Assembly: GCA_035084275.1 (NCBI GenBank) | Contig: CM068771.1 | Span: 5,394,001 to 5,458,000 of the forward strand | DNA length: 64,000 nucleotides | Source of the DNA: Hydrolagus colliei | Lineage: Eukaryota | Reading direction: 5' to 3' | Part shown: positions 22,168-63,891 of the stretch, piece by piece | Numbering within the stretch: position 1 is the stretch's first letter | Layout: each line of letters begins with the position of its first letter | The notes under the pieces: generated by a model | What the model saw: the letters and a program-made list of their open reading frames with translations, nothing else | Databases searched by the model: none | Told to the model about the DNA's origin: nothing | Made by a program: the position numbers and the translations under genes

Positions 22168-22620
22168 TCAAAGGTTCATGTACGTCCTCAAGTCTCTCTC
22201 CCATGCCCTCTCTTTTGTCTCCTTCCTCCTCTCTTCCCTCCTGCTCACTGTAGCCACTCTCTTCACTCGAACAGGCAGGCCCTCCGTCCCCTTCACTGCT
22301 CCTTCATCACCAGCATCAAAGTGTGTCACCTTTGCCTTCAAGTCACTCTGAAATCCCAGCCCCCTCTGATCTCTTTCAGGACAGTCTTGACGGGGAATTT
22401 TTGCCCCGTCCCCTCTGGCCCAAGCCCCTTCTCCCTATCCCAGCCCCCCCGCAGCATCATTTTGAAGCCGCGGTTAGTCTCCGGGATGAAGTAGTAAGTG
22501 GGGGCGGGAGGGTTCCTCGTGTTGAACAGGTGAAGTGTGGATCTCTCGTGCTCTCTGACGCTGGCCTCCTCGTATTCCACCTCACAAACCAGACAGAATT
22601 TCTTCTCCTTCGGTCTCTCC
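22168..22620 (-). CDS. GPANK1: GPANK1 last coding exon (G-patch), -1 frameshift at 22374-22376
   Basis: Phase-2 acceptor caacag|G. TVLK then, after adding one A, RDQRGLGFQSDLKAKVTHF...RAWERDLRTYMNL*. Confidence 0.92.
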
Positions 22621-24104: not shown

Positions 24105-24467
24105 TGCGTACAGACGCTCCCAGCATTCAAACCATTGGATATTATCTCAATTCACTCCTCCGCACGCCTTGCAAACGATGCCCCTTTAGGGGTGGGGGGG
24201 AGAAAGCAGAGTGTGAGCTTTTATATCTAGATGTCTCAAAGCGCTTCACAGAATATACTGTTAAGTCAATTGATTGTATATTTGTGGGGTGAAATGTGGC
24301 AGCCAATTGCGCACAGCAGTGTCCCCCCCACCACACACAAAATGGGTTAAAATTAACAAATTATCATTGTTATTTTAAGGGATTATCATCAGGTGTGTGG
24401 AGTAATAAGGGGAGTGGCAGAGAGAGGGGGGGGGGGAGGGAGAGAGAGGCAGGGAGAGGGGGGGGGG

Positions 24468-30060: not shown

Positions 30061-30329
30061 CGGGGGAGAGAGGCAGGGGGGTGGTAGGGAGAGAGGCAGG
30101 GAGAGTGTGGGGGGGGGGGGGGGGGAGAGAGAGGAGGGTGAGGGGGGGAGAGAGAGGAGGGTGAGGGGGGGAGAGTGGCAGGGAGAGGGTGGGGGGGAAG
30201 GGAGAGCGAGGGAAAGAGGGAGTCAGTCAGTGGGAGGGAGGGTGGGAGGGAGGGAGGGAGGGAGAGGAAGACAGGTCGATAAAAAAGCGAAAGAAAAGGA
30301 TAAGAGAATGTTTTACTGCAAATATTTAC

Positions 30330-30549: not shown

Positions 30550-33500
30550 GTGAGAGACACAGACAGAGACAGACAGGGAGACACAGAGAGAGACACAGAC
30601 AGACAGGGAGACACAGAGAGGGTCACAGACACAGACAGACAGGGAGACACAGAGAGGGTGAGAGACACAGGCAGGGAGCGACAGAGAGGGTGAGAGACAC
30701 AGGCAGGGAGCGACAGAGAGGGTGAGAGACACAGGCAGGGAGCGACAGAGAGGGTGAGAGACACAGGCAGGGAGCGACAGAGAGGGTGAGAGACACAGGC
30801 AGAGACAGACAGGGAGACACAGAGAGGGTGAGAGACACAGGCAGGGAGCGACAGAGAGGGTGAGAGACACAGGCAGGGAGCGACAGAGAGGGTGAGAGAC
30901 ACAGGCAGGGAGCGACAGAGAGGGTGAGAGACACAGGCAGGGAGCGACAGAGAGGGTGAGAGACACAGGCAGAGACAGACAGGGAGACACAGAGAGGGAG
31001 ACACAGAGAGGGTCACAGACAGGGAGACACAGAGAGGGTCACAGACACAGACAGGGAGCGACAGAGAGGGTGAGAGACACAGGCAGAGACAGACAGGAAG
31101 ACACAGAGAGGGAGACACAGAGAGGGTCACAGACAGGGAGACACAGAGAGGGTGAGAGACACAGACAGGGAGACACAGAGAGGGTGAGAGACACAGACAG
31201 GGAGACACAGAGAGGGTGAGAGACACAGACAGGGAGACACAGAGAGGGTGAGAGACAGAGACAGACGGGGAGACACAGAGAGGGTGAGAGACAGAGACAG
31301 ACGGGGAGACACAGAGAGGGTGAGAGACAGACAGACGGAGACAGAGACAGACAGGGAGACACAGAGAGGGTGAGAGACAGAGACAGACGGGGAGACACAG
31401 AGAGGGTGAGAGACAGACAGACGGAGACAGAGACAGACAGGGAGACACAGAGAGGGTGAGAGACAGACAGGGAGACACAGTGAGGGTGAGAGACAGACAG
31501 GGAGACACAGAGAGGGTGAGAGACAGAGACAGACGGGGAGACACAGAGAGGGTGAGAGACAGACAGACGGAGACAGAGACAGACAGGGAGACACAGAGAG
31601 GGTGAGAGACAGACAGGGAGACACAGTGAGGGTGAGAGAGACAGACAGAGACAGACAGGGAGACACAGAGAGGGTCAGAGACAGACAGGGAGACACAGAG
31701 AGGGTGAGAGAGACAGACGGGGAGACACAGAGAGGTTGAGAGACAGACAGGGAGACACAGAGAGGGTGAGAGACAGAGACACAAAGAGGGTGAGAGACAG
31801 AGACAGACAGAGAGACACAGAGAGGGTTAGAGAGAGAGAGGGGGTGAGAGATACAGACAGAGAGAGATACAGAGAGGGTTAGAGAGAGAGAGAGGGTTAG
31901 AGAGACACAAACACAGACAGACAGAGAGATACAGAGAGAGAGGATGAGAGACACAGACAGAGAGACACAGAGAGGGTTAGAGAGAGAGAGAGGGTGAGAG
32001 AGACAGACAGAGAGACACAGAGAGGGTTAGAGAGAGAGGGTGAGAGAGACAGACAGAGAGATACAGAGACGGTTAGAGAGAGAGAGAAGGTGAGAGACAC
32101 AGACAGAGAGATACAGAGAGGGTGAGAGACACAGACACAGAGAGACAAACAGACAGAGATATAGAGGATATAGAGAGAGGGCTAGAGAGATACAGACACA
32201 GGTTAGCGAGACACAGACACAGGGAAAGCTACAGAGATATAGAGAGAGGGTGAGAGAGACACTAGACATAGATTTTGGAAGGGGGTGGAAGAGAAAAACA
32301 GAAAATCTCATGCGGAGATATAGGGAGAGGGTGTGAGAGAAACAGACACAGAGTGGGGAAAAGAGAGAGATACAGATATGAGAGTGTGTAGAGAATAGAA
32401 TTAAAATCAATCCGCTCCGAGACAGGGATCCAGTGAACTCTGGCAAGGACTGGAGTATCGGGGAGATACAGATGTGTGTATGTGTCTATATATATGTGTG
32501 TGTAAATATATAGATATATATGTATGTATATATATAATATATAGAGAGAGAGAGAATGGGGAGAGATATCAAGGGATAAGATCTCAATTTGGTTGTAAGT
32601 GAATGAAATGCCCCTTTTATCTCTCACACAGGCCGTCACTGATCAGAGTGATGTTGCTGAGCTGAACCTGGGAGAACTGGACTTAACATCTGACGAGTTT
32701 ATCCTGGATGAAGTAGACAGTGAGTGTTTGAGCCACACTAATCAGAATATAACTTATTATTAAATAGCACCTTACATTGATTTAGCGACCTTTACACAGT
32801 CTTGGGGCACCTAACAGTGGTGAACGCTGATGACGATGAGGTGACCTCCCTCCCTCGTTCATGTACGGTCAAAGAGTAAGGCCTTCAATCATGATCCAAG
32901 CGAGGAAAAGTAGGAGCAAGGGGATTAGTATCATAAACGGAAGAATCCTTGAAATTAGACAGTGTCACGCGTTGGGAAGACCATCTAGAAAAGAACCTAA
33001 CTCCAGTTTATACGTTAATTGCTTTAGAAAAAATGTGTTCGCTTAACGTCGCACTTTTCAAGAACCAAACTACGACGTTACCTGTACTGTAACGATTGCT
33101 TCTGTTTTGCAGTTCACATTCAAGCTAACCTCGAAGATGAACTGGTGAAGGAAGCACTAAAAACTGTAAGTTTTGAATCCCTGGGTGGACGCCATGTTCT
33201 GCTGTGCTTCGTTACGGAGCCTTTGACATTTCTGTTTTACCCTTGTGGAGTCTTAACTGCTAAACTTGCCATTGATATCGCTGTCTGGCAAGCTTACCTG
33301 ACGCTTGTCCAACTAGGACCACCAGGTCCACCAGGCCCATTAGGGCTTTGGCTTGTCCCCAGTGACGGGTCTGCCCTTCCAGGTCCTGCCGATGAGCTGT
33401 GGAATACCATGGAACTTCCTGGCACAAGAACCGGAAGAGAGACCGTCACGGAGGGCATCCTCGATTCTGAAATTCCATTGCCAAGCACAGAGGGGCAAAG

Positions 33501-45900: not shown

Positions 45901-48623
45901 CCCTCACCAACCAAACCCTAAACTGAGTACTGTATTATATAAACTGTTTCTCTCCAGGACTGTTCAATTTATGAGCTGCGTTTTCCCCCAAATCAAGATA
46001 ATAAGCATGTTCTCTCTGCACAGGAGAGGGCCACGGATGACAGTAAAGAGGTGGAAAGCTTCCAACAGCTTTTAGGGGCCAGGAACCAGGTCAGTGATTT
46101 CAGTGACCCTCTTCCCCACGCCTTTACTCATCCAACAACTTGTATTCATACCCAGGTGAAAGCCACTTTGGCCGGGACGGCAGTTAAATTGGACAAAATA
46201 CCCCAACCCTGATTAATTTGTATGTATTCATGGAGTCCTGTAGTTCACGGGTTAGAACAATCACCCTGCAAGCGAGAGACCTGGGTTCAATTCCCAACCA
46301 GGGCGAAACCTTGGGGAAATTTCCTCGTTCCACACACCTCATAATAATCACTCGAAAACAATAATAAATTGGTCATTTCAATCCACGACTGTTTGTGGGA
46401 CGCTGCTGTGCGCAATTGGTTGCCATGCTTTGCCCACAACTATACAGTCAATTCACTTTACAGTATATTCTGTGAAGCGCTTTTGAGACGTCTGGAAGAA
46501 GTGAAAAGCGCTGTATCAAATGCAAGGATTATTATTATTATTATCCGTACCTTAAATATGCCTATTAATTCGGACAGAAATCCGGTTGGTTACTCCAGAG
46601 TAAATGCCTCACTGGCCGCTACTGAATGTACTCACTCACGACTTCTGTGCATCAAGTGGCTCCTGGTAGGAGATAGATGGAGACTTAAGATTGATTGACA
46701 GCGGACTCCAGCCATTCACAAGCAGCTCTAGGCTGCCAATCAATCAGGGGACGGAGGAACGGGATAGAACAATGTAGGGAACAGGAGCAGTTAATTCTTG
46801 ATTGATTTGATTGGATGGTTGGTTGGTTGATTGATTGATTGATTGACTATCCAATTGGGTGCCCAAACATTCACAAGCTCAAGGCTGTGATTCACCTTGG
46901 AGTGGTCCCGCCTCACTCTTCTGCTGGCTGGAAGAGGGAGGGAACTTCGGTTAACCTAGGACACTGCTCAAGATGGACAAAATGGCCACCACCCGATGTG
47001 TCCGTCTTAAGTGGCTTTCACTGTATTTGAATAATATTTTGGAAACTTGGCATCAGAGGAGGGCAGTATAAAAGTTGACATCTTTTGTTCACTCCAGGAG
47101 TTTATCGAAGAGATTCTGTCTCCGCCTTTTGGAGGGATGATAGCCTTTGTGAAAGAAGCGGAGGTTCTGATAGAAAAGGGCAACTTCGAGAAGTTGAAAG
47201 CAGAGGAGGGTAAGATTGTGGGGCTGTGTCTCGCCTCTTATGCCTACAATGTTTACCGCGCAGAACCAGACCATTCAGCCCATCAGGTCTGTGCTGGTGC
47301 CATCTTCCCCACTCAAGCTGCTCGCAACAATAATAATAATTACTATATTTTGTGGGTGAAATGCCACTTTGTCCATCAAATGGGTACGGTGATTTGCAGT
47401 GGCACGGCGATTTCTAGCCAACAGTCATGGATTGAAGTCACCAAACATATTACTTTTAATAATTGAGTCAGGAATTTGGAGCTGAGTGTTTGAATCAGAA
47501 GGAGATGGAGGGCTGGGAGGGTAGGGGTATGAGGGTGAGCGAAAGCGCAGGCAAAGTGGAGGGTCTTGACACTGGCAATGAAGGAGGTGAGGGAAGGTGG
47601 GAGGCTTTGGGATGGAGTTTCAGAACTTAATGGTGAGGCGGGCCAGGCCTGAACAGCAGAGCTAGATGGAGTCTGCTGAGCAAAGGAAGCAGACAAGGTC
47701 AATATAGAGTTAGCAGATGATGAGAGTTAGGAAAGAGCAAGCCAGGGCTTTGAAGTCGAGTGCAAAATGTATCTGTATATTTAAATACTGTACATTTGAG
47801 ACTTCCTCATCTGTCTGTTTGTTTCTCGCTTGTCTCAGGCCGAGTTGTGCAGTTAGTTCGAGGCTTTGCGGCCACCTGGAAGCAGGCAGTAGAGAATCTC
47901 AGTCAAGATGTCATGAGATCTTTCACCAACTTCAAGAACGGGACAGGAATCATACAGGTAATGGCTCCAATCCTATCTTGGTATATTGTACATAGAATCA
48001 GATGGCTCTGTAGCTGTTACATGTAGCGCGGTTGATGATAGGACAGCCCAGTCAAGGCGAGAGATACAGGAAGAATATTCCCGAGTTTTGGGGTGTAGTG
48101 TGGTTAAAGGAGTGGCCACTGATGGTGGGCGGAGGGGTACGAAGGACATGCAGAAAGCCAGAGTCATTATCAAAGCTTCCAGACGCCGTGATTACATTAG
48201 GAATAATTCTGAAATTAAAATTAATAATATAATCTAGTGGAGCCTAGCGAGGATGGGTGTGAAGTGGGTATGGAGTTTTGTGTGTGTGATAGGGGCCAGT
48301 GAAGTCTGGCGAGGACTTGTGTGAAGTAGGTTACGGAGTTTAGTTTGGGTGAAGATGTGATCGGTACAGTTTTGGTTCAACTGTACTTTGTGGATGGTGG
48401 AGCTGGGGAGACCGGCGAGGAGGACATTGAATAATTACACAGGTGAGGCTTAACGTAAGTTGTACTGTATTTGCAGGGCGCTCTGACCCAGCTCATCCAA
48501 TACTATCACCGTTTCCACAAGGTCCTCTCTCAGCCACCCTTCAAGAGCCTGGTGGTGAGGTCTGAGCTCATTAACATCCACCACCTTATGGTGGAGGTCA
48601 AAAAGCACAAGCCCAACTTCTAG
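30508..48623 (+). CDS. VPS52: Vacuolar protein sorting 52 (GARP/EARP subunit), 20 exons, 708 aa, intact
   Basis: Twenty exons with consistent phases sum to 2127 nt. Translation follows VPS52 from LGELDLTSDEFILDEVD to INIHHLMVEVKKHKPNF*. Confidence 0.97.
30550..32260. repeat. GA/CA-rich tandem repeat (GAGACACAGAGAGGGTGAGAGACACAGACAGG-type)
   Basis: ~30-36-bp units in several variant blocks, starting exactly at the exon-1 donor. Confidence 0.95.
32632..32719 (+). CDS. VPS52: VPS52 exon 2
   Basis: AVTDQSDVAELNLGELDLTSDEFILDEVD. Confidence 0.93.
33113..33165 (+). CDS. VPS52: VPS52 exon 3
   Basis: IHIQANLEDELVKEALKT. Confidence 0.95.
33578..33653 (+). CDS. VPS52: VPS52 exon 4
   Basis: GVDLRHYSKQVETELQRIEYDSIKD; followed by the U12-type donor GTATCCTT. 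Confidence 0.95.
34206..34273 (+). CDS. VPS52: VPS52 exon 5
   Basis: YIKESQNIASLHNQITACDTILE. Confidence 0.95.
34856..35031 (+). CDS. VPS52: VPS52 exon 6
   Basis: RMEQMLSTFQSDLSSISCEIQTLQEQS...LVVPSSMI. Confidence 0.95.
35811..35961 (+). CDS. VPS52: VPS52 exon 7
   Basis: IILESSVTEQEFLEQLHEL...DVQDILDRLKIK. Confidence 0.95.
36085..36781 (+). mobile_element. Solo LTR (ERV- or Gypsy-type)
   Basis: 697-bp AT-rich insert bounded TG...CA, terminal IR TGT(G/T)GAA, 4-bp TSD CCCC (36081-36084, 36782-36785), AATAAA at 36702-36707. The flanking C-rich repeat resumes after it. Confidence 0.75.
37300..37590 (+). mobile_element. Old Deu-domain SINE (SacSINE1/AmnSINE1-like)
   Basis: GATGTTAAACCGAG..CCCGTCTG...GAAGGGAGTT.CTC.CCGGTGTCCTG.CCAA core, recognised from memory of the DeuSINE consensus. 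Confidence 0.6.
37663..37763 (+). CDS. VPS52: VPS52 exon 8
   Basis: AVTKIRDFILHKIYSFRKPMTNYQVPQNALLKY. Confidence 0.96.
38646..38778 (+). CDS. VPS52: VPS52 exon 9
   Basis: FFYQFLMANERHVAKEIRDEYIDTMSKIY...RLMKVQ. Confidence 0.96.
39060..40090 (+). mobile_element. CR1 LINE fragment (ORF1 esterase-like and endonuclease region), degraded
   Basis: Remnants resembling DREGKKGG..ILIK, EHL.NSDHNI and LNWKR.NF with many disruptions. Confidence 0.65.
40130..40187 (+). CDS. VPS52: VPS52 exon 10
   Basis: YEEVADKDDLMGVEDTAKK G; followed by ATATCCTT (AT-AC intron). Confidence 0.95.
41139..41272 (+). CDS. VPS52: VPS52 exon 11
   Basis: GFFSKPSLKNRNTIFTLGNRG...IIVPHAAQKNDAR; preceded by TCCTTAAC...AC. Confidence 0.95.
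41810..42290 (-). mobile_element. Young L2 LINE 3' fragment
   Basis: [36 protein letters not shown]...; closely similar to the copy at 53600-54395. Confidence 0.9.
42718..42873 (+). CDS. VPS52: VPS52 exon 12
   Basis: YPFESLFRSQHYALLDNSCREYLFLCDFF...TLTMFL. Confidence 0.96.
43055..43173 (+). CDS. VPS52: VPS52 exon 13
   Basis: KHMDNYVADCFDSIAIFLCIHVILRF...IPAVD. Confidence 0.96.
44300..44423 (+). CDS. VPS52: VPS52 exon 14
   Basis: YWGTLLDILWPRFELVLELNIQSIRNTDPQKLGALDTRPHY. Confidence 0.96.
45014..45109 (+). CDS. VPS52: VPS52 exon 15
   Basis: VTRRYAEFSSAIVSINETYPNEKTHSLLGQLQ. Confidence 0.96.
45347..45454 (+). CDS. VPS52: VPS52 exon 16
   Basis: VEVENFVLRMAAEFASRREQLIFLINNYDMMLGVLM. Confidence 0.96.
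46024..46089 (+). CDS. VPS52: VPS52 exon 17
   Basis: ERATDDSKEVESFQQLLGARNQ. Confidence 0.95.
46232..46543 (+). mobile_element. tRNA(Ala)-like-headed SINE, representative near-complete copy (roughly 30 or more fragments in the window by eye)
   Basis: A/B-box head, Deu-like 3' body GCTGTGCGCAATTGGCTGCC, L2-like tail GTGAAGCGCTTT.GAGACGTC...GTGAAAAGCGCT..ATCAAATGCAAGG(ATT)n. Confidence 0.9.
47098..47209 (+). CDS. VPS52: VPS52 exon 18
   Basis: EFIEEILSPPFGGMIAFVKEAEVLIEKG...KAEE. Confidence 0.96.
47839..47957 (+). CDS. VPS52: VPS52 exon 19
   Basis: RVVQLVRGFAATWKQAVENLSQDVMRSFTNFKNGTGIIQ. Confidence 0.96.
48477..48623 (+). CDS. VPS52: VPS52 exon 20 (stop)
   Basis: GALTQLIQYYHRFHKVLSQ...HHLMVEVKKHKPNF*. 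Confidence 0.96.
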   Translation, partial: GALTQLIQYYHRFHKVLSQPPFKSLVVRSELINIHHLMVEVKKHKPNF

Positions 48624-48859
48624 CAGCCACAAGGCTTCTGATCACCAATATCCGGACTTTGCATGAAAGGTCCCGGTGATAAAACAGAGCAAACTTGCCG
48701 CGAGGGTTTACTCTGTGGGTCAGTGCGTATTCTTGTCCGCGGTTTCCACCACTCGATAAGGACCGTGGACGTTCAGCCTGGGAGCGAGTGCAGTCCCTGA
48801 CTGCACAAGTTCTCCACTCGCCAAGGCCTCCGTCGGAATATATTCAAACCTTGTTTTAA

Positions 48860-48865
48860 ATTAAA
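48860..48865 (+). terminator. Putative VPS52 polyA signal (ATTAAA)
   Basis: ~240 nt after the stop and followed by a GT-rich tract (TTTGTTGTGTTGTT). Confidence 0.45.
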
Positions 48866-51578
48866 CAGTTTCTGGTGAACAAAATGCCTCTCGTTTGTTG
48901 TGTTGTTAGCGTGCTCGCTGAGCAAGCGAGAGGATCTGGGTTCGAGTGACGGGCGAAACAAAACCATAGGCAAGTTTCCTTACTCCACATCACACTCTTC
49001 TGTTTTTCTAGCAAGTCATAGTAACCAATTTGTTAGTGGATTGGAGGATTTATCACCTCTTCTAGACTCACATTATATATTGTTGTGAATTGACTATATT
49101 TTTGGGGTGAAATACGCCAATTGTGCACATCAGTGTCCCACGAACAGTTGTGAATTGAGTTAAGTAAATTATTATTCTCATTTCTGTTAGGGATCATTGT
49201 CAATGAGTGACCATGTTGTTATTTTTAGAAGAGATTATTACCCCTGGAAAAAGGATCCCCCCCCCAAAGAACTAACAACCAGATTCCTGCTAGGTATACA
49301 GAAGCTTGTGAAGTAAGGAAACTTGCCAAAATGTCAGTAATTTTACACCAGCTCCTTTTCTGTTCGAGAAATTGCTCTGAATTCCAAATGATAAATATAT
49401 CAGTTAATAACCATTAAGCAAAATGATAGAAATGGTACAATTCAGATTTGTATTCTCTTTGCATTACAACAACAAAACTATATTTGTAATAGCACATTTC
49501 AGTCGGGAGGACGTCCCAAGGCACTGGACGGTTATTGTTTCACATCCGAGCTGTGGTCAAGATTGGGAAGGGTGGAGAGAAAAGGGGTGAATGATTTAGG
49601 GTTCCCGTCAAAGAGAAGGGTCTTGGGGCGGAACTTGAAGGAGGCTTGAGAGGGGACAAGGCAGAGGGACTGCAGAATAGAATTCCAGAGGTAAGGGGCA
49701 GAGTGACTGAGTGTGAGTTGGGGTACAAGAGTGTGGGTAGGGGTAAGAGTGTGAGTAAGGATATGTGGGTGGGTAGGGGTGTGTGTGTGGGTAGGGCTGT
49801 GAGTGTGGGTAGGGCTGTGAGTGGGTAGGGGTGTTGACTGAAGGCTCGCCCGCCGATGGTAGGGTGGTTTAGGAGACATGGAGCAGAAACAATTAGGACC
49901 TTTACACTCAAAAGTATGTTACATCATTATTTAATAACATTACTGTATTATGTGACACAGAATATGCTTGTATTTTATTGGTGAACACGCCAGACAGTTT
50001 TACTGACAGCAACGTCCTGCGAATAGACGTTGAATACAATTCGGTCAATCTTATATTGCAGATACTTTAAAATTAATTGCGCATGATTTCAATGAAGCAA
50101 AACAATAATTTTCAGATTTCAATAACACGATAAGCGAGCTCACAGAGACTGGTGTCCCTTTACAAAGCAGAATTAGTCTGTGCCGGCTCTTTGAAAAGAG
50201 CAACTCAATCCCACTCCCCAGCTCTCTCTCCAGAACCACGCAAACCCGTCCTCCCCAAATAAATGTCTTCCTCTCTTTTAAAAGTTGTTATCGAATCGGC
50301 CTCCACCACCTTTTCAGGCAATGCATTCCAGATTCAAACAACTCGCTGAGTGATGGCTGTAAGACAAAATTACCAATCTGCTATGAAGGTTTGCCTATGT
50401 ATAAAATGTTATTGTTTCACTTGCAAAAAGATAATCCCCCCACCCGAAGTACAAAGAAAAAATTATATTGTTGCATAATTAGAATTTCAAAAGCTTTTAA
50501 CTCATTATAATCGTACGCAGAAACAGAAAATATATGCTTGATTTTGGAAACGTTGATACGCAACCAAAAGCTGACTATGCTAATTATATATAGGGTTTTC
50601 TTTTAGAAAGCTTCTACAGAGAAAATGCATACTATATCAGACTACTAATTTGGAATATAAAAAACTTTTTACATCTCCTGCAAGTCTATTGATAACCTAA
50701 CAAGAGTTGATATATGCATTCCACGTGCATTATTTCGCCCACATATATACATCAACAACAACTTGGATTTATGCTATTCATTCTTGGGGGGGAAATTTTG
50801 ACGAAAAATGACCAAAGGAACCTAACTCCAGTTTTCACATTCATTCTTAAGGGAAAAATGTATTCACTTAATGTCATTTCGCTTAAATTCGCCCTTTACA
50901 AGAACCAAACTACGGGGTCTTCGGATCTTTGGTACAGGCAGGAATGTCTCATCTAAAGCTACATAAGCAGCACATTGCTCAGCTCTTCACTGGAGCATCA
51001 ACGTAGACCAACATTGGCTGCTGAGAGACAGATTCCCCCATTTGAGAAAACGTCTGCTGGCTAAACAAGCAATATCTTTGTGTTTCCCTTCCAGAAACTT
51101 AACAACAGGTCTATTGGGCTATGGGGAGCGGGCAGGGCAGTGGGATTGAATCGCTCTTTTCAAAGAGCCGGCACAGACTAGATGGGCCGAATGGCCTCCT
51201 TTTGTGCCGTAAAATTCTATGAATCTATGAATCTAAACATTTATGGGTTACAGAGGGAGCGGGTAAGCCAGATTAAATGGAAGGCTAGTGTGGGAGATGT
51301 GTAAGAGTCGAGTTGGCATCTCACAGCCGTATTGGTGTAAGAAAGCTAATTGTTTCAATCACGGTAGGTTCAACCATCACATTGGTGTGTTGTCTGTAAG
51401 AAAAATGAATTACATTTATACACGGTCACTACATCCTCAAACTAAATCAATCTTTGCCTGAATCCGTCCGGCTTGCAAACCTTCTCGCCTCACCATCAGA
51501 TACACCTGAAGTAACTGTGACTATTCTTTTTTGGTCTGACATGTGGCTATACATCATGATGCTTAAGAGCCTCTAAAC

Positions 51579-51911: not shown

Positions 51912-52502
51912 CTCTAAACCAAACCGAGAATTCCATGCATCCGATCTACACATGGGAATCCCAGAGGCTGATTGCTGGAATGAAACACGCACTCTCCATG
52001 GAGAGGCATATGCTGCTTATCTGATTCTGGAATGCATTAGGTGCAGGTTGGCAAGAGCCAAGGCCTGGGTATCCCAATGTGTGCATTGGATTTACTGCAG
52101 GAGTCTAAACAGCTAAAATCACATAGCTTGCCATCGATATCATTGCCTGGCAAGATCTTCAACTGCTTGTCTGATTTGGACCACCCTACCCATTAGGGCT
52201 TTGGCTTACAGAATTAACGGGAGCTGAGTTGGAGAGATTCCCTACTCCAATTGTAGGTCCACTCTTCCAGGTCCTGCCAATGAGCCAAGCTGGGCTGTGC
52301 TGTCCTCAGCAGTGCCTTGAAATACTGGCTCAGGAAACAAACTAGTGACCGTCGGAGGACTGGCTCGATTCTGTCATTCCTTTGATAGGTATGTTTGCTT
52401 TCAGCCAATTCAGCCCAAAGGAGACCTCTCAGTTACCAGGAAGATCATTAACAGTGAGGGGAGGGGGTTTAGGGTGATAGCTCATGCGTTTCTGATACCT
52501 AC

Positions 52503-52562
52503 CTTGGTGCTGCTTATCTTTGCTGATGAGTGAGCTGTTACAATCGTCTGGTTCCCTGTCCT
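52503..52562 (-). CDS. BTN-like probable cytoplasmic exon (60 nt)
   Basis: ttgtttttcag|...|gtaggt, open in phase 1: [20 protein letters not shown]. Confidence 0.5.
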
Positions 52563-55500
52563 CTGAAAAACAAGGCATGTATCTGTCAGTCAACAGCAAC
52601 CTGCGCCATCACGTCTCGGAGAACACTAAAGAGACAGGATCCTATAATGAGCAGGGAAGAGGAAGGGGCAAAGGCGTGATGGAAGAGTAGGGTTTCACAT
52701 GTGATATGAAAACCGATAAGAGGGATGTGGGGGGGCACGGGAACTGGTCAGGTCGCAGCAAGCACAGACAAATGGATTTGTCGGACGCATCAAATCACTG
52801 AACTGAGCTCTTACGACGAGTTACTCTCCTACCTAGTTTAGTGTCATCCGCGAATTTAGACACGTTACATTCAATGTCCTCGTCTAGATCATTGATGTAG
52901 ATTGTAAGTAGCTGAGGCCCAAGCACTGATCCTTGTGGCGCTCCACTAGTTACATCCTGCCAATTCGAGAATGACCCGTTTATCCCTACTCTCTGTTTTC
53001 TACCCATTAGCCAAAATCTAAATATATCACATCTCCTGGTTCCTCCCTATATAATAACTACTTCCTTCTCTAACTTAATGCTAAATTCTATCATATTATG
53101 ATCACTTTGCCCTAGAGGAGCCTTAAGTTCCAGTTTGCTGATCAGCCCTGTTTCATTACACAAAACAAGGTCTAATATGGCCTGTTCCCTGGTTGGCTCC
53201 TCGGCATACTGATCTGGAAAATTATCCCTGATACATTCTATAAACTTTTCCTCGATCTTACTTTTCCGAACTTGGTTGTCCCAGTCTATATGCAGATTAA
53301 AATCACCCACAATTAGTGTCTTTCCTTTGCTACATGCTCCACTAATCTCCTCATTTATACCTTGAGCGATACTGACTGCTGTTTGGGGATCTATAAACTA
53401 CTCCCACTAGAGTTTTCTGCCCCTTATTATCATGTACCTCTACTCATACTGACTCTACATCCTGCTTCTCTGATTTAAAATCTTTCCTCTCCACTGTTTT
53501 TATCCCATCCTTTATTAGCAGGGCCACCCCCCCACCCCCCCTCATTTACCACATTGCCTTGTACCCATATCTCGGTGATGGCTACTAGATCATACCCGTT
53601 TAGTCTCTATCCAGCCTCAACATCCAAGGCTGCACTCTCCACCTCACAAAGCCAGTCAGGAACCTCGGCATCACGTTCGACCAAAAACTCTCCTTCCTCC
53701 CCCACATCCGCGCCTTGACCGGCACCGCTTACTTCCACCTGCGCAACATTGCCAGGCTCCGCAACTATCTTACCCCCCGCGCTGCCGAAACACTCGTGCA
53801 CGCATACATCACCTCAAGGCTGGACTACGGAAACTCTCTCCTTGTCGGCCTCCCCAGCTCCTCCATTCACAGGCTGCAGGTCATCCAAAACTCTGCAGCC
53901 CGTGTACTATCCCGCACCCGCCTCCGCAACCATATAACCCCCACCCTCGCCCGTCTCCACTGGCTCCCCATCCTCCAGAGGATCGAGTTCAAGATCCTCG
54001 TCCTCACCTTCAAGGCCTTACATGGTTTTGCCCCGCCCTATTTATCCAATTTACTCTCCCCCTACAAGCCCACCCGGACCCTCCGTTCAGCAGGACTTGT
54101 CCTGCTCCAAGACCCCCGCCCGAACCGCCCCACCATCGGAGGCCGGGCCTTCAGTTTTTCTGCTCCGACCCTATGGAATCCCATCCCCCAATCCCTCCGT
54201 CTCGTTTCTTTCTTTTCCTCTTTCAAGGCCGGTTTGAAGACTTTCCTCTTCGACCGTGCCTTTTGTTCCACCCAGAATTCTTCGACCTCCCAAACACTCC
54301 CCTCCCAGCTCGGGTCACACGCCTCTTGTGCAGCGCCTTGGGACGTCCTCCCGATGTGAAAGGGGCTTTATAAGTGTAATTTGTTGTTTTTGTTAATTGT
54401 GCATTTAATTCATCTATCTTGTTTTGAGTGCTATGTGCATTCAGATATAGCGCCCTTAATTCTGACTTCCCCTATGAATTGATTGCATATTTGTGGGTGA
54501 TGTAAACCTGGGGCAAATGCAGGAAATGTTGTAAGTATTTGTGATGTATCTGATGAGAGCTCTGGGCTCTCACATCTCCCTTGCATACCTTGTTTTGCCT
54601 CTTTAAGCTCTTTCTCTGTCAAGGGAAAGAGATAAGAATTAGTTTCCATCTTAACGACACAACAATTACAAAATTTCTGACATTATTAGGCACACGTTGT
54701 TGAGAGGCAAGGCTGTGGGGGGACTCCAGGGTGTGCTTTTATTGGATAAAACTCACTTCACGCCCTGGCACTTCCCTATCTCTTTGACCTTCTTACACCT
54801 CACTCCACTATCCATCACTTCCGATAGTTTGTCTCTGAGATCCTCTCGATCCCTCGCCCCACCCGCTCACCGTTGGAGCCCTTCCTTTCAGCCATTGCAA
54901 CCTAATTATTATTATTTTTAATTTGAAGGGATTATTAACCCTGAAAGAGAGATCCACCAATGGAGTAACAGCCAGATTCCAACTTACTCCAGTATGGGAT
55001 GCCTTCCTCCCAGCCAATTTGCCCCCAAACTATTGAACGCTCTTCCTCAATCCCTCCACATTACTTCTTCCTTAGCTGTCTTCAGATCATAGTGGAAGAC
55101 TTTTCTTATTGACCGTGACTATCTTGTTCTCTCTCTGTTGTTCTCCGCCAAGACTAAAGGGGGTTAGCTAAGGGATAGAGTGCTACTTGAACAGGTGTGA
55201 CACCCAACTCTTATCTCTTGGCCTCTATCCCTGACTCCAGGACTACCACAGTCCTGACAGACTATCTGGATGAGAGCTAACTTTCTACAGCTGAATGTCA
55301 ATAGGACCGAGGCCCTAGTGATTGGCTCGCGCCAATCTAGACGGCATTCCCTCCGCCTCGCACCCTCGCTGGCCTCCTTCAAGTCTTGCCTCAAGACTCT
55401 CCTCTTCGATGACATCATTGGCAACTCCTAAACCCCCCCTTCCGCAGCTCGGGTCTGAAGCAGTAACTGTCCATCGCCTTGGGATATCTCCCTGATGTGA

Positions 55501-58500
55501 AAGGCGCTATACAAATGTCATTTGTGCTGGTTGTTGTTGTTGTATGGACAGGTACAGCCACATGAACAGGTATGGGTGCAACTTCAGTTTAGTGTTTTAT
55601 CTGAACTAAGCCGCTTCTGGCAAAACGGCAGAGCTTCAGCCTCGACTGTGAGCTCAAAGTCCCCATATGGGACTGAAACCCTGAGCTTTCTAACTCGGAA
55701 GCCAAGGTGTTAGTGGATAAATACAAATACAGGATTATTTTTAAATGAACAATTTTCAGAACATTTTTCAACCCTGTTTTACATTAATACAGTTCTTCAG
55801 ACTGATTTACTTAGAGGTTAAAAGTACAGCAGAAGTGTTAACTAGTCAGTGTTCAGCGTCTGCAGTTTCGTTAAGGTACCAGCTTGAACAAAGCCTGAAA
55901 TGTGCTCAATCAAGTGTAACAGGTCAACCTGCTCAACTTCATAGATTGATTTGTTCTATTTACACTTAAGATGTATCATCCAGGTCTGACTAACCCAGAG
56001 CGAAGGGTTAATGCTTTTTGCTGAGGTGGTATAATAGGTGTGACTTCATGTAAAGTGTGTAAGATGAAAGCTCCGGGCTTCCTCGAGTCCCTCTCACTTA
56101 CCCAATGTTTCAATCCGCTGCTGCATCTTTCCTGAGGGAAAGAGATACGAGTTAAATTCCTTCGTATTGGCACAACAAATCAACGAATTCCAGACAGTAT
56201 TGGGTGCAAGGCTGGGGCCCGGTGGGAATGCGGGGCCGAGAGTATTGCTAGTTTGTAACCCACTTCACACTTTGGCACCTCGATTGAGTGTCTCACCTGA
56301 AGGACGACGGTTCTACAACGCGACTCCCTCCCCCAGCACATTTACTATTACAGTAAAAGCCCATTTACCCGGAAGCTGATCAACCGTAACTTGAGACGTC
56401 CTGCTGACGTGAAAGGCGCTATACAAATGTCATTTTGTGCTGGTTGTTGTTGTATGGACAGGTAAAGCTACGTGAACAGGTACGGGTGCAACTTCAGTTT
56501 AGTGTCTTATCTGAACTAAGGCGCTTCTGGCAAAATGGTACTTCTCTCCCCCCCACCCCCCCCCCCCCCAGGGCAGTTATAGAGCCTCAGCCTAGACTGT
56601 GAGCTCAAAGTCCCCATATAAGGATTAAAAACCCCTAACGTTCCAACTCCTAAACCAACTTTATCACCAAGCTGTTAGTGATAAATACAAGGATTTATAC
56701 AGGATTTTTTAAAAACAAATAAACAATTTTCAGAACAATTTTTAACTCTCGTTTTACATCAATTCTTCAGACTGATTTACTTAGAGGTTAGATGCTATTA
56801 AAGTACAGCAGAAATATTAACTAGTCAATGTTCAGCATCTGCAGTTAAGGTACCAGTTTGAACAAAGCCAAGCCATATTGAAATGTGCTCATTAAAGTGT
56901 AACAGGTCAACCTGCTCAACTTCATAGATTGATTTGTTCTATTTAAATTTAGATGCATCATCCAGATCTGACTAACTCAGAGCGAAGGGTTAATGCTTTG
57001 AGCTGAGTTGATGAAAAAGCTGTAACTTCATGCAATGTGCGTGAGATGAAAGCTCCGTAAGTGTCCCTCACTTACCTTTTGTTGCCTTTAGCTGCTCATT
57101 CTCTCCTGAAGTAAAGAGATAAAGAGTTAAATTCCTTCATATTGACACAACAATCAACAAATTCCAGACAGTATTGGGTGGAAGGCTGGGGCCCGGTGGG
57201 AATGTGGGGTCGGGGATGGCTGAAAGTATCGCTAGTTTGCAACTCACTTCATACTCTGGCACCTCGATGTCTCATCCGAAGGACGACAGTTCTACAATTC
57301 AACGCCCTCCCTCGGCAAATTTGCTATTACATAAATAGAGGCTTGTGGAGTCAGGAAACTCTCATAAGGTTTTTACCCTGCCTGGAGATGGAACCCAGAT
57401 CCTCTGGCATGTGATGCAAGTGCTCCAACCACTGAACTATAGGACTCTACATCGTGCAGTGAAAACATGGCCAGGAACCACCAACAACTACAACAAATTG
57501 CATTTTACACAGCGTCTTTCACGTTGGGAGGATATCCCAAGGCACTGGATAGGCTTGTCAGGGATTTGGTCACAAGCTGGAGGTTGGGTCCCGAGGGGTG
57601 GAGTTCGGGAGGGTGACCGAAGGTGCAGATGTGGAGGAGACGCGCGTTGGAGGAGACAAGGTGGAGGAATGGTGGCATAGAATTCCAAAGGGTGGTCAGT
57701 GAAGATTGCAACTCACCAAATAACCTCTTTTGTTCTGTAGTAATAAAGAATAAATCATGGTTACATTTAATGTAGATTTTCTCACATTTCAAAACACTTC
57801 ATAGTCAACAGGACATAGACGGGACTTTGATTTAATGTATCATCCAATGGACGGCGCTTCTGACAATGTGGATCTCCCCCCAGATCATCAGCCTAGATTG
57901 TGAGCTGAATGTCCCAACATAGGGCTGAAACGCCCAAAGAACTAACTGGGAGGCCAGGGTTTTGGTGACTGAGGCTGACTAACCCCATACTCAAAACAAG
58001 AATTTTTTTCTGGTCATCCGGGTGTCTGACACATGTGGAAATCCAAAACTGCTTAAGAGTATCCAAACCATGGCTGAGAATTCCATGCATCCCACTGACA
58101 ACTGGAAATCCCAGAGTTTGTTGGAATGGAAAGATAATGCTCACTGTCTCCCTGGAGGGACACATCTAGTTACCTAATGCCAGAAAGTATTAGGCGCAGT
58201 TTGGCAAGAGCCATGATTTGGGGACCCTAGAGTGTGAATTGGAGTAATTGCTGGAGTAACCAGGAAATCCCCACAGCTTGCCATTGATAAGTCAGTCTGG
58301 CAAGATCTTCCCGCTGCTTGTCCAGCTCGGAGCACCCTATAGCACCCTCCTGTTCCTCACAACCGGCCAGCTCCTCCGCCGTCCCCGCCTCTCTTCACAG
58401 AACCTCTTCTCCAACTCCCACTGCGAGGACATGCTAGATTTCCTCAAGTCCAAAATCAAGGGAATTTGCTCACGTGTCATTGCCCTTCCAACTTCCACCC

Positions 58501-61500
58501 CTCCCCTCCACATTCCGACTCCTACCCACCCCTCATTCCATACCTTCGAACCTCTCCCCATCCTCCGTCAACACCACTATAACCTCCATGAAGCCCACCA
58601 CCCACTCTCTGGACCCCATTCTCACCCCTCTCCTTACCTCACAACTACACCTCTTTGCCCCACTACTTGCTGACCTACTCAACCTGTCCTTCTCATCGTT
58701 CCCACCCCACTCAAAACAGCTACCATCACCCCCATCCTCAAGAAACCATCCCTTGAAGTGTTGCAGCTGTCAAGCTACCGACCCACCTCCAACCTCCTCT
58801 TCCAGTCAAAGGTGCTTGAAAGAGTTGTTACCTCCCAGCTTCGCTCCTTTCTCTCATCGCACTCCCTCCACGAGCCCCTCCAATCAGGCTTCCACACTGC
58901 CCACAGCACGGAAACTGCCCTGGTCAAGGTCACTAATAATATCTTGACCATCTGTGACCAGGGCTCCTTCTGCCTCTTCGACACCTTGGACCACACAATC
59001 CTCCTCCGCTGCCTCTCCTCCCACCTTAACCTTCAAGGTTCTGTCCTCGACTGGTTCCAGTCCTACCTTTCACACTTCCTCCACTTTGTGTCCTTTTCCT
59101 CCAGCCCCCACATTGTTTTGTGCGGCGTTCCTCAGGGCTCTGTCCTTGTTCCCCTCTTCACACTCTACATGCTCCCCCTCGATGACATCATCCACAGACC
59201 TTCCACATGTTTACAGATGACACCCAACTCTACCTTTCCACTTCCTCTCAACTCCACGACTACAGGCATCCTGATTGCCTGACTGTCTTGACATTGAGTC
59301 CTGGACAACTTTCTCTAGCTGAATGAGGCCCTCCTGATTGGCTCGCGTCAACCTCTCTGCCCCCACATACTGGAACTCCATCCCACAGTCCCTTCGCCTC
59401 GCTCCCTCCATCGCAAGGTGACAGGGAGTCATCAAGTCGGAGATATCAGAGGGGTCAAGGCCGTGAATGGCCGTGAAAGTGAGGATTTTTTATTTGATCC
59501 TCTGGGGAGCGCATTGAGACAGGTGAAAGTAGGAGTGATGTGGTCGCATAGCTTAGTGCGGGGGAGGACAAACATGTTGTCTTGGGACAAGTTTGAATAA
59601 TAATTGCATTTGAGAAAGCACTTTGCATGTCTTCTATACTTCTCAAAGCGCTTCACAGAATATACTGTAAAGTGAATTGTCTGTATATTTGTTGGCGTTG
59701 TCACCAAACATGTCAACGTGGAGCCAGTTCAGGTCCAAGGAGGAACCTCTTAGTTGGCAGGTAAAAGTTGTAAGTGAATGTGATGTGTGCGTGGTGAAAC
59801 ATCTGAGCTCTCCCATCTCCCTCACATACCTCTGTCTGCCATCACAAATGCTTTATCTGACAAAGGAAAGAGATAACAATTAAGTTTCCATCATAATGAT
59901 ATACCAATTACCGAATTCCGGACAGTATGAGTCACAGGTTGTCGAGAGGCAATAATAGGGCAACACTAGGACATGTGTTATTGGGGAAAGCTCACTTCAT
60001 GCCCTGAGACTTCCCTATCTCTGACCTGCTTACATATCACTCTACTATCCACCATCTCCACTCAGCTGACACTGATCTCCTCTTGGTCCCTTGTCCCACC
60101 CATTCCACCATCAGACGCGTTTCAGCCACCACGCCCTAAAGCTATTGAACGCTATTCCTCAATGCCTCCACCTTACTTCTTTCTCCCTTGCCCATCTTCT
60201 GATCATAGCTGAAGATTTTTCTCTTTGAAAGTGACTATCTCACCTTTTGACAACCTGTGCCTCATCTACTCTCGGTGTCCGCCAGTACTGAGGGGGCATA
60301 GCTCAGTGATATGGTGCTACCTGCTCAGGTTTGGATGGGACTTCAGGGGAGATATCCCCCTATTTACGACAGGGTTGCGTTCCTGAAAAATGTCACGCAA
60401 GTCTAAGCGCCATAAATCGAAACGCGGGTTCCCGTGCGGTCCCAGTATATAACCCGAGATGCGTTCTTTTCACAAAAGTTGTGGACCTTAAACCCACTAA
60501 AATTAACACAAAACACACAAGAAGGGGGTAAATGTACAGTACTGTACTTTAAAACTGGTTAAATTACTGTAATACTGGCGTGGTGTCGCTTCAAAACCAA
60601 CTGTTTTTTAAATAATGAGCTAGCTATTGGCCAGACCGCTTGGATACAACTGCGATTTTACTGCAAAATACCGCTAAGCGTGCGCAAAAAAAGATGCACC
60701 AGATTTTTTGGTCGTTAAAACGAAAACAAAGGTCTTATATCGATAAAAAGCCGTTGAAAAATTAGGTTCGTTAAATTGAAACAATGTAATAGAAGCATCG
60801 TAAATCGGGGGTTGCCTGTCTCATTGGATTCAAGGTGCTTCTGACAATGCGATGCTCCCCCTATCACAGTTAGGGGGCCACAGCCTGGACTGAATCCCTC
60901 CACCTTACTTCTCCAATGACCCCTACTTTCTAACTTGGGAGTCCACAGTGTTGGTGACTGAGCCAGGCTAATCCAGAGTGACGTGGTATTGTTAACGCTT
61001 TGAGTTGAGTGGTGCAATAGCTCTAAGTGAATATGATGTGTGCGTGATGAAAACTGGGCTGCCCCGTGTCCCTTTCACTTACCTGTCTTTTTCTTGTCAC
61101 GCATGATTTCTATTAAGGGAAAGAAATTAGTTAAATTCCCCTCATAATTACATACAAATTACCGTATTCGGGACAGTATTGGGTATAGGTTACCAAGAAC
61201 AAAGGCTGGGTGGAGAAGGATGTATGCTACTCCATTCCCTCTTCCCCTCCATTCCACCAGAGAGGTGAGCAAAGGAGTGTTCAAATAGTAACAACAACTT
61301 GCATTTATATAGCGCCACTCATGCAGGGTTGTTACTGCAGCACGACAAGGCCAAGATGCGGAGAGGGATTTGCCAGTAAGTATGATCAAAGAGGAAGTTA
61401 TTGAGCCTTGTTTGACCCCTCGCTTCACCTTTCTACCCCTCATCCGTGCCATGAACTCTTCTGCCTTTCCCCACCTCCGCAACATGGTTACAACACAAAA

Positions 61501-63891
61501 GTACATGTGTAGTGTTGGAGCCTTTCGCATGGGGAAGACATCCCAAGGAGATTTGGACTCGAGCTGGATGTTGTACTGTAGGGATGGTGTGCAGGGAGGG
61601 TAGGGTGGCCAATGGCATGGTCGAAATGGAGGGTCTTGAGCAGAGTAAGAGATGGAGTGAGTCAGAGGGACTACAGGGATTGATTTCCAAAGGTTGGGGG
61701 GCAGAGATGCTGAAAGCCAATGGTGTGGTAGACAAGGCGTGGAGCCTGCTGAGCAAACAGGGAAAGCCCAATAAACCCATACCCTCTGAATCCAGGCAAG
61801 AGAAGACTTACTTATGATCCAGATGAGTAGAGAAACGATTATTAACGCAAAAATACCAATTACTATGTTCCGGCCAATAGGACTTGTTGTCATTGCTATG
61901 TACCTATTTCTGTTGAAGGAATAGAATTGGTCTGTAGAGAGAGTGGAGAGGCTGACGGTCAGTTTCTGGATTAGAATTTATTTAATACAGTAATAAATGC
62001 TTATAATTGATATAGCGCTTCATCCTCTCATTGAGACGACTCAAAGCACCTCAGAGATTATACCTTTGAAGTGTAGTGACTGTACATTTTGTGGGTGAAA
62101 CACAGCAGTAAATTGCGCACAGCAATGTTCAACAAACCATCGGGGATATCGGGGAGTGTCCAAATAATTTTATTGATTTATCTATGAAGGGATTACTACC
62201 CCCGGAAAAGCAGCTAACAGCTTAGTTCCTACTCACTGCTGGGCAAACAGAGATGGTGGAATAATTAAATGTACTGTAAATTGAATCCAGGTCTCCTAGT
62301 TTACAAAGTAATTGCTCTAACCATCAAGCTAAAGCACTCCACTTATTATTAATAATGCTTGCATTTAGAGTCTTGTCACGTCATTGAGACGTCTCAAAGT
62401 GCTTCAGAGGATCTACTATAAAGAGAATTGACTATACTTTATATAGGTGAAACGCAGCAGCCAATTGCACACAGCAGTGTCTCACAAACAGTCGTGAATT
62501 GAGTGACCAAATTTCTTCTGAGGGATTATTAATCAAAAAAAATCAACTGCCAATCAACTAACAACAGGGTTCCTACTTACTGCTAGGTAAACAAGGGCGT
62601 GTGGAGAAAGGAAATTGTTGAAGGTTTTGCCCCACCAGGGAATCGAACCTTGGTCCCATTACTTGCCGGACAAGCGCACTAACCACTGTACAAACCTCTA
62701 CAGGACTCCACAATAAAGAGATTTTAGAACAGACCTGATAAGCGGAGGGCGCTGAATTTTTCCGAATGCAGTAGATCGTTGGTTATGACACACGTAACTT
62801 TGTTCACAGAGGCTGTCTTCAGATCAATAGCACTGCTCACATTGAAGAACCCCCCTGCAGAACGCCGAACATCTGGGGGATTATTCGCTGATAAATGATT
62901 GTTGTGCTCGTCCAACCACGTCACGGTTGGCGCTGGGTACCACCTCTCAGACGTGCACTCCAGCTTCACATTCTCAGAGCTGATCTCACTCAGTTCGATC
63001 GTGGGCTGATAGCCCTCGGCTGTGGAAATGAAAAGAAAACTTCAGAAAACCCGATCGGCGAGATCTAGCGCATCGTCTTAACAACTTACTGCTGGGTAAA
63101 CAGCGGTGTGTGGAATTAGGAAACTTATGTAATGTTTTGCCCTGTCCGGGAACCGAACCCAGGGCTCTCGCTTACGAGGCGAGTCCTCTAACCAATCAGC
63201 TACAGGACTCCCAACAACAACCAAATTCCTTCGATATAGATAGTGCCTTTCACACCTTTCAGGCTGGTCCAAGCTGGACAAGCAGTGGGAAACCTTATCG
63301 ATAGTGTGGTTTAGCTGGTTAGACTCCAGCAGTTATCTCAAGGCACACTCAAGGGAGAGTGGATTCCATTCCAACAATCTGTCTCTGCGATTTCCATGCG
63401 TAGGTGGGATGTTGGAAATCGCAGCTTAGTTTGGAGACTCTTAAGCAACAGCGATGGGTTCCCGCGCGTGTCAGCTACCCATTTGAACCCCCGACAAACC
63501 ACCCCAAAAAAATTAATCCAGAACAAGACAACAATCTTTGCCTCACCTGCAATTTTCAGGTTAACAGTCGCAGTCAAGGTTTTGCTGAATTGTTTCACTG
63601 AACAATGATACTCTCCCTCATCTGCAACAGTCAGTTTCGTTATCAACAGGGACATGTTTCCGTGCCCGAATTGATCTTTGAACAGGTTCGTTCTCTGGGC
63701 GTACTTGGAATCCTGGGGCTGATCCTGCCCCATTTGGTACAAGTGGACTATCTGTGGGCCAGGGTTTCTGAACCACCGCACCTCAATGTCGTCCGCCACT
63801 CTCGGGGGCACCAGCTCGCATTCCAGGATCACCTGTCCATCCACAACGCGCACAACATTGTACCCAGGAGTAGCCAATTCACTGTCATTGT
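52503..63891 (-). CDS. Butyrophilin-like (BTN/BG/MOG family) gene, partial: IgV-IgC-TM-cytoplasmic mini-exons; leader exon lies beyond the window, terminal exon unresolved
   Basis: IgV 63547-63891, IgC 62735-63019, TM ~61812-61909, mini-exons 61083-61109, 59830-59856, 57076-57105, 56102-56131, 54589-54615, and a probable 60-nt exon 52503-52562. Ig and cytoplasmic exons are all phase 1. Confidence 0.8.
52810..53530 (-). mobile_element. CR1 LINE, internally deleted (endonuclease joined to RT)
   Basis: [10 protein letters not shown]...LDLVLCNE...[11 protein letters not shown] abuts [28 protein letters not shown]...KFADDTKLG. Confidence 0.9.
53600..54395 (+). mobile_element. Young L2 LINE 3' fragment
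   Basis: Open ORF2 C-terminus [11 protein letters not shown]...[10 protein letters not shown]...QNSAARVL...LHWLP, with a (TTG)-type tail. Confidence 0.92.
54589..54615 (-). CDS. BTN-like mini-exon 5 (27 nt)
   Basis: cccttgacag|...|gtatgc; EKELKEAKQ. Confidence 0.75.
56102..56131 (-). CDS. BTN-like mini-exon 4 (30 nt)
   Basis: tttccctcag|...|gtaagt; [10 protein letters not shown]. Confidence 0.75.
57076..57105 (-). CDS. BTN-like mini-exon 3 (30 nt; CAG-GAG tandem acceptor would give 27 nt)
   Basis: tttacttcag|...|gtaagt; [10 protein letters not shown]. Confidence 0.75.
58330..59420 (+). mobile_element. L2 LINE RT fragment
   Basis: [18 protein letters not shown]...QSGF...[10 protein letters not shown]...FDTLDH...GVPQGSVL. 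Confidence 0.88.
59830..59856 (-). CDS. BTN-like mini-exon 2 (27 nt)
   Basis: cctttgtcag|...|gtatgt; DKAFVMADR. Confidence 0.7.
60343..60818. mobile_element. Tigger/pogo-like MITE
   Basis: Right end reads CAGGCAACCCCCGATTTACG on the minus strand; degenerate left match CCCCCTATTTACG; CpG-retaining AT-rich interior. Confidence 0.5.
61083..61109 (-). CDS. BTN-like mini-exon 1 (27 nt)
   Basis: cccttaatag|...|gtaagt; KIMRDKKKT, basic stop-transfer residues after the TM. Confidence 0.75.
61812..61909 (-). CDS. BTN-like transmembrane exon (5' boundary 61909 or 61895)
   Basis: [19 protein letters not shown], then A|gtaagt. Confidence 0.75.
62735..63019 (-). CDS. BTN-like IgC exon
   Basis: EGYQPTIEL...[18 protein letters not shown]...FNVSS...[10 protein letters not shown]; 285 nt, phase 1-1. 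Confidence 0.92.
63547..63891 (-). CDS. BTN-like IgV exon
   Basis: VILECELVP...EVRWFR...VHLYQMGQD...YAQRTNLF...[22 protein letters not shown]; 345 nt, phase 1-1. Confidence 0.93.

Follow-up and report, generated by a model that had tools for sequence, protein, structure and literature searches.

A butyrophilin-like gene with five predicted paralogous mini-exons and no detectable B30.2 domain in Hydrolagus colliei

We analysed a 64-kilobase (kb) window of the Hydrolagus colliei genome (contig CM068771.1, 5,394,001 to 5,458,000; all coordinates below are positions within this window), the minus strand of which carries a butyrophilin-like gene next to VPS52. The original prediction for this DNA, made from its letters, had described a receptor with IgV, IgC and transmembrane (TM) parts, a coiled-coil tail assembled from tandemly duplicated mini-exon cassettes and no B30.2 domain. 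We consider it probable that the gene encodes a butyrophilin-family (BTN/BTNL) type I membrane protein, with an IgV domain, an IgC domain, a TM segment and a short and highly charged tail from five paralogous mini-exons, that it lacks a B30.2 domain, and that it has an ortholog in the elephant shark (Callorhinchus milii). The exon structure, cassette paralogy, family placement, synteny and lack of B30.2 coding potential on which this reading is built were observed directly.

Exons, family placement and the missing B30.2 domain

Reading and translation of the minus strand gave nine exons, from IgV to a predicted exon e6, with AG...GT borders throughout and phase 1 in all nine; the leader exon falls past the window end. 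The IgV exon (63547-63891; 345 nucleotides (nt), phase 1-1) translates to a domain matching Pfam V-set (3e-13) and shares 50-56% identity with the V domains of C. milii BTNs. It is followed by an IgC exon of butyrophilin type (62735-63019; 285 nt), which matches the C2-set_3 model (PF22705, BTN3A2-like Ig-C and specific to butyrophilins; 5e-19) and the BTN1A1 structure, and by an exon for the connecting peptide and TM segment (61812-61931; 120 nt), which has an 18-residue hydrophobic stretch and can be aligned to the C. milii TM exon. Five mini-exons then follow on the same strand: m1 (61083-61109; 27 nt, KIMRDKKKT), the upstream flank of which is collinear with the C. milii intron preceding the last exon; m2 (59830-59856; 27 nt, DKAFVMADR), whose cassette can be aligned to positions 14203-14600 of the C. 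milii locus (L001); m3 (57076-57105) and m4 (56102-56131), each of 30 nt and 10 residues and identified by splice scores and by alignment of their tandem units; and m5 (54589-54615; 27 nt, EKELKEAKQ), the flank of which is 73% identical to L001 14258-14485. Translation, splice scores and exon borders thus bear out the predicted series of 27, 27, 30, 30 and 27 nt after IgV-IgC-TM, and the spliced tail of 47 residues reads exactly as first given.

Splice sites were scored with a simple weight matrix, on which the mini-exon acceptors reached 8.9-13.3 and the donors 8.1-12.7 (regional 99th percentiles of AG and GT sites, 9.0 and 8.9, respectively). Both strands of the whole window hold 16 strong acceptor-donor pairs 15-99 nt apart; half of them (8 of the 16) fall in the 9.4 kb that follow the TM exon, 6 of these 8 being open in phase 1. 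Two other pairs were rejected as extra mini-exons: an 18-nt pair (57717-57734) has good sites but lies inside a transposon-derived stretch, and a 70-nt pair (54871-54940) contains phase-1 stops.

Beyond m5, the predicted exon e6 (52503-52562, minus strand; 60 nt), from which the original prediction took its start coordinate, has strong sites, is single-copy and would add 20 residues. Its donor is open, and the transcript model, and with it the gene, therefore continues past e6. The best acceptor after it, at 51393 (score 11.1), opens a predicted terminal exon (51377-51393, minus strand) that reads DNTPM and then stops, at the place where the collinear map puts the beginning of the C. milii last exon and 3' untranslated region (UTR); no other candidate acceptor adds more than 40 residues in the part of the interval free of VPS52. 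The predicted tail is 52-72 amino acids long, and the 3' UTR probably runs to an AATAAA at 49974-49979. At each of m1-m4, reading through the donor leads to a stop after two codons, so short-tail isoforms may be formed as well. The notion of in-frame, skippable modules also stood, because all mini-exons are symmetric phase 1 and skipping any of them keeps the frame.

Placement within the B7 family was assessed by ranking solved structures per V-C unit, which gave BTN1A1 102 bits, BTN2A1 97, BTN3A 84-94, BTNL8 86, CD276 68-71, MOG 65, ICOS ligand 49 and PD-L1 43, and by a profile search, nearly all matches of which are named butyrophilin by their sources. A maximum-likelihood tree built from V-C units joins the gene to C. 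milii XP_007909661 (support 100/99) and places C. milii XP_007909660, which carries B30.2, as sister to these two (97/95); a clade of cartilaginous-fish butyrophilins (89/91) encloses them all, and a PD-L1-like protein falls outside it. Judged by these sequences, the gene is a member of the butyrophilin branch of the B7 family. The phylogeny proposed as a check of the original prediction was run in part: the nesting of IgV-IgC among cartilaginous-fish BTNs came from a tree without BG, MOG, CD276, B7-H4 (VTCN1) or HHLA2 sequences. That the gene is instead another B7 member (B7-H3/CD276-like, B7-H4 or HHLA2) nevertheless appears very improbable. CD276 does head the list of PDB matches by summed score, but that sum comprises two V-C units of 68-69 bits, and a single unit reaches about 70 bits against 102 for BTN1A1; in addition, the IgC exon matches a BTN-specific Pfam model, the nearest relatives carry PRY/SPRY, and no B7-H4 or HHLA2 chain is among the best 60 PDB matches listed. 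The predicted butyrophilin identity of the IgV-IgC-TM part was therefore upheld.

The tail points the same way. Butyrophilins have several very short 'heptad' exons (PMC6790196) that vary in number (PMC12841164), and a single TM segment followed by five phase-1 exons of 27 or 30 nt has that form. When a Hypanus sabinus BTN2A1-like protein (P0158) was mapped onto its gene, seven 27-nt phase-1 mini-exons were found between the TM and B30.2 exons, each with the G|AR...G|gtaag design also seen in H. colliei, and the ectodomains of this protein and of C. milii XP_007909660 are 34-44% identical to that of the H. colliei gene. Mini-exon arrays are thus the usual butyrophilin layout in these fish, and the H. 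colliei gene has that layout without B30.2.

No PRY/SPRY sequence was found between the tail and VPS52 (48.7-52.5 kb) by reading of open reading frames (ORFs), by tblastn with C. milii BTN or by a custom B30.2 hidden Markov model (HMM) run without filters. The sole match of that HMM in the window is an orphan C-terminal SPRY fragment (1147-1503, minus strand; Pfam SPRY 6e-9; custom HMM 2e-15 over positions 90-161), which comprises the last ~70 residues of the domain, is truncated on its upstream side by an inserted transposon and sits immediately downstream of a same-strand cytochrome P450 gene. We give scarcely any credence to a B30.2 domain supplied by long-range splicing to this fragment, or to an exon outside the window: the fragment is on the gene's strand and downstream of it, but it is 50 kb away, past the opposite-strand VPS52, an ankyrin-repeat and G-patch gene and the P450 gene, and it shares no more than 24% identity with the B30.2 of C. 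milii BTN. The C. milii ortholog also lacks B30.2 and has a 3' UTR collinear with H. colliei 51.3-49.3 kb. The relic of a PRY/B30.2 exon start was also considered in e6, 14 residues of which a three-way alignment set opposite LDPDSANGQLLLSRDLK of C. milii BTN, and found no support, as Pfam found no PRY in e6 or in its read-through and the unfiltered HMM left it unmatched. The absence of B30.2 that had been predicted is supported by these searches and by the ortholog. It does not exclude the gene from the butyrophilins, because accepted members such as BTN3A2 also lack the domain.

Paralogous cassettes and a tandem duplicate

Similarity among the five cassettes covers about 95 nt before the mini-exon and about 40 nt after it, in agreement with the paralogous intron contexts that had been predicted. 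The flank motif AATACTGTCNGGAATT is present on the minus strand at all five (10 matches in the window against 1.5 expected, a count reached by none of 100 shuffles), and TTATCTCTTTCCCT has 7 matches against 0.7 expected; both are far above chance and restricted to the cassette stretch and the minus strand. The upstream flank of m5, delimited by flank alignment and motif counts, spans 54616-54818, and its equivalents, also on the minus strand, lie at 61110-61219 (m1), 59857-60110 (m2), 57106-57200 (m3) and 56132-56226 (m4); every one contains a branch-point-like TTTAAC and a TATCTCTTTCCC tract. There are also two degenerate flank-like copies with no usable mini-exon, one at 52024-52069 (minus strand), recognised by motif and repeat matches and part of a local repeat, and one at about 58176-58222.

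Cassettes 3 and 4 form the tandem duplicate that had been described, with minus-strand units of ~0.95 kb (56404-57335 for m3 and 55492-56357 for m4) that are ~90% identical outside the exon. As cassettes these two are 83% identical; identity is 59-72% among m1, m2 and m5 and 65-69% between these three and the C. milii cassette. In a cassette tree only m3 + m4 was resolved. Splice sites and frame are retained in all five cassettes despite this divergence. The exons of m3 and m4 differ more than their surroundings, with 69% identity against 90% across 667 flanking columns (Fisher p = 0.003), and constitute the most divergent 30-column window of the ~790-column alignment; the differences include a compensating pair of 1-nt insertions or deletions, by which the frame is kept. 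This faster exon divergence recalls, by analogy, the selection for variation reported in BG tails.

We dropped the idea that the flank is a splicing enhancer kept over long evolutionary distances: it aligns to the C. milii intron, but whole introns and the 3' region also align with C. milii (66-76%), so that its conservation is unexceptional. No similarity was found between the H. colliei cassette flanks and either the flanks of the seven Hypanus mini-exons or the rest of the 67-kb Hypanus locus. Because the Hypanus flanks are unrelated, recognisable cassette paralogy is specific to the lineage of the H. colliei gene. The two arrays differ: seven mini-exons with unrelated flanks and then a PRY/SPRY exon in Hypanus, five with paralogous flanks and no B30.2 in H. 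colliei.

The introns between cassettes are filled by reverse-transcriptase fragments of long interspersed elements (LINEs) and by tails of LINEs and short interspersed elements (SINEs), at 52795-53310 (minus strand), 53715-54359 (plus strand) and 58278-59282 (plus strand), with one insertion between m5 and e6.

The elephant-shark ortholog and the surrounding genes

An exhaustive protein search with the IgV exon alone gave C. milii V9KQI3/XP_007909661 as the closest single-domain relative. This protein is 49% identical over 247 residues and consists of IgV-IgC-TM and 31 residues after the TM segment, with no B30.2; a single-sequence word-index search returned two distant matches only and overlooked the 49%-identical ortholog. 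The C. milii gene lies tail-to-tail with VPS52, as does the H. colliei gene, which is bounded by a convergent VPS52 on the plus strand (~34.8-49.1 kb) with a 3' end (48585-49136) 76% identical to that of C. milii VPS52. Collinearity between the two loci extends through introns and into the 3' region, at 66-81% identity (introns 66-76%), and by this gene order and alignment the H. colliei gene is the positional ortholog of XP_007909661/V9KQI3. The C. milii entries (XP_007909661-64 and V9KQI3, annotated as 'butyrophilin subfamily 3 member A1-like' and 'SKINT1 homolog') share IgV-IgC-TM, the lack of B30.2, the convergence with VPS52 and one homologous cassette. With an ortholog already annotated, the H. 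colliei gene is a solid but quite ordinary addition to the family. Repeats are also shared: blastn gave 291 repeat matches (median identity 77%) between the window and 24.5 kb of C. milii sequence, compared with 2 between the window and 67.5 kb of Hypanus sabinus, a contrast that would by itself mark the source as probably a chimaera (holocephalan) and not a shark or ray.

The orthologs differ in the tail. Mini-exons are lacking in C. milii, where a single last exon comes after the TM exon; the ~95 nt before this last exon, together with its first ~24 nt, align to all five H. colliei cassettes. The C. milii cassette is equivalent in position to m1 on its 5' side and to the H. colliei terminal region on its 3' side, and H. 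colliei therefore carries ~9.7 kb extra, made up of m2-m5, e6 and transposons. The donor position holds GTAAGT or GTATGT in H. colliei but GTATAT in C. milii, where reading continues into a stop 16 codons on. A 31-amino-acid tail with one read-through cassette in C. milii stands against five spliceable cassettes, e6 and a predicted tail of 52-72 amino acids in H. colliei. The C. milii last exon (L001 14475-14549) resembles a cassette with a donor decayed to GTATAT, and a 24-nt mini-exon would be in frame if that GTATAT were used. The cassette amplification of the original prediction therefore holds relative to the C. milii ortholog (five versus one) but is no expansion relative to the seven mini-exons of Hypanus, and the cassette tree decides neither its timing nor its direction (gain in H. 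colliei or loss in C. milii).

One alternative is that the cassettes are mostly unused, the mRNA ending by read-through at the first or a later cassette with a stub tail, and the downstream cassettes being duplicated relics. The C. milii database sequences, which read through the homologous position, the stops two codons past m1-m4 and the frequency of intron read-through in chicken BG tails (PMC5938342) are all consistent with it. We nonetheless regard it as unlikely: the five cassettes keep splice scores in the top ~1% and an open phase 1, although m1, m2 and m5 are as diverged from each other as from the C. milii copy; the weak GTATAT of C. milii is replaced by GTAAGT/GTATGT in H. colliei; and the m3 and m4 exons diverged faster than the surrounding intron, which is unexpected of neutral relics.

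A second alternative, that the gene is decaying or a pseudogene in the H. colliei lineage and its tail exons meaningless, draws on the ratio of non-synonymous to synonymous substitution rates against C. milii (dN/dS 0.78 for IgV and 0.91 for IgC), on an exon nucleotide identity to C. milii about as high as that of introns and on introns packed with transposon insertions. Against this, the ORFs are intact in both species, with no stop or frameshift in ~320 codons at a dS of ~0.45, and the canonical Ig cysteines and tryptophans, like all splice sites, have been retained. High dN/dS is, moreover, usual for butyrophilin-like and Skint-type genes, and intact ORFs at such ratios would fit a fast-evolving immune ligand better than a pseudogene; decay seems quite improbable.

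Elsewhere in the window, a multi-exon cytochrome P450 gene (3217-13319, minus strand; Pfam p450 1e-24 on one exon), which we take to be CYP2-like from its haem-region motif, and GPANK1 (BAT4)-like exons with ankyrin repeats and a G-patch (~22300-24100, minus strand) lie beyond VPS52. VPS52 and GPANK1 are genes that in human lie in the major histocompatibility complex (MHC) region; despite these two neighbours, no class I or class II gene was found in the window. Sharks are reported to have BTN genes linked to the MHC, whereas no such report exists for C. milii (PMC12841164). The window also contains a G-rich minisatellite (24425-30075; 5.6 kb, ~234 copies of the 24-nt unit AGGTGGGGGGGGGGGGGAGTGGCA, GC skew ~+0.88), a GA-rich array (30552-32159), a C-rich array (14995-15665) and runs of N at 16865-17151 (287 bases) and 21066-21265 (200 bases). 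Four tRNA-like sequences called by ARAGORN (13486-13559, 46235-46305, 57374-57445 and 63138-63208; Ala, Cys, Val and Thr, respectively) are most likely SINE heads and not tRNA genes, as their positions are those of a repeat family of which the C. milii locus also has many copies (for example, L001 16243-16558).

Tail architecture and its possible role

The original prediction had likened the gene to the chicken MHC BG genes. Like them, it is a butyrophilin relative with no B30.2 and a phase-1 mini-exon tail, and read-through to early stops is predicted for it from its sequence. Chicken BG genes have 27-38 exons of 21 nt, and their tails, in which intron read-through is common and leads to early stops, are under selection for variation (PMC5938342; PMC4046983). 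The two also differ: BG proteins have no IgC and a long, regular coiled coil, whereas the H. colliei gene has an IgC exon, so that its ectodomain is not IgV-only, and in place of a long coiled coil of 21-nt exons it has five exons of 27 or 30 nt and 47 residues, with heptads over only ~28 of them. The five mini-exons are also no BG-like expansion, because a B30.2-bearing Hypanus BTN has seven. A BG-like architecture reached by amplification was thus an overstatement, although the setting in a basal jawed vertebrate, a cartilaginous fish, was correctly given. What is distinctive of the gene is the missing B30.2, and its layout is closest to that of human BTN3A2. Human and primate BTN3A2 and the B30.2-less BTNLs share IgV-IgC-TM, short 'heptad' exons and the lack of B30.2 (PMC6790196) and are MHC-linked, but theirs is an independent loss of B30.2 in another lineage, with no orthology to the H. 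colliei gene.

The heptad signal is modest: one register could be set over 28 residues of m3-m5 (ENEQ...EAKQ), with N, L, K, M, I, L, L and A at the a and d positions, and its score was equalled by 13 of 2,000 shuffles. By analogy with mammalian butyrophilins, the protein would reach the cell surface in dimeric form, a short coiled coil next to the membrane (~3-4 heptads across m3-m5) helping to hold the two chains together, and would present a fast-evolving Ig face to a lymphocyte receptor. With no sensor domain of its own, it would signal only through partners, possibly a paralog nearby that bears B30.2, in the manner of human BTN3A2 with BTN3A1. We infer dimerisation, partner use and ligand alike from the mammalian proteins. 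Tail length would be variable, since any mini-exon could be skipped in frame and an unused m1-m4 donor would end the protein two codons later, with e6 and the tiny terminal exon possibly following the mini-exons.

Several observations count against this account of the gene and its tail. The stretch of heptads is short, with a glycine inside it, and with exon units of 9-10 residues its register would be lost on skipping. Exon e6 has no counterpart in C. milii, and the single C. milii cassette is read through as a terminal exon and not spliced, so that early termination is possible in H. colliei too. The dN/dS values of both Ig domains are compatible with relaxed constraint, and no ortholog closer than that of C. 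milii was found in the protein collections searched.

A further step, which we put forward tentatively and think rather unlikely, is that the cassettes make up a module for tail length and dimerisation that undergoes alternative splicing and is actively evolving. The last exon of a B30.2-less butyrophilin would have been tandem-duplicated in a chimaera lineage, the upstream copies would have become internal mini-exons, and selection would have driven their coding parts apart, as the contrast between exon and flank in m3 and m4 could suggest. If true, the array would parallel the chicken BG tail, independently and at an early stage.

Together, these results open no new class of system. They indicate that a B30.2-less butyrophilin was fixed beside VPS52 before H. 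colliei and C. milii split, and that arrays of 27-nt phase-1 mini-exons are an old, standard part of butyrophilins and not a peculiarity of birds or mammals. In addition, one read-through cassette in C. milii and five spliceable ones in H. colliei would provide a small, clean case for the interconversion of terminal exons and mini-exons and for change in tail length.

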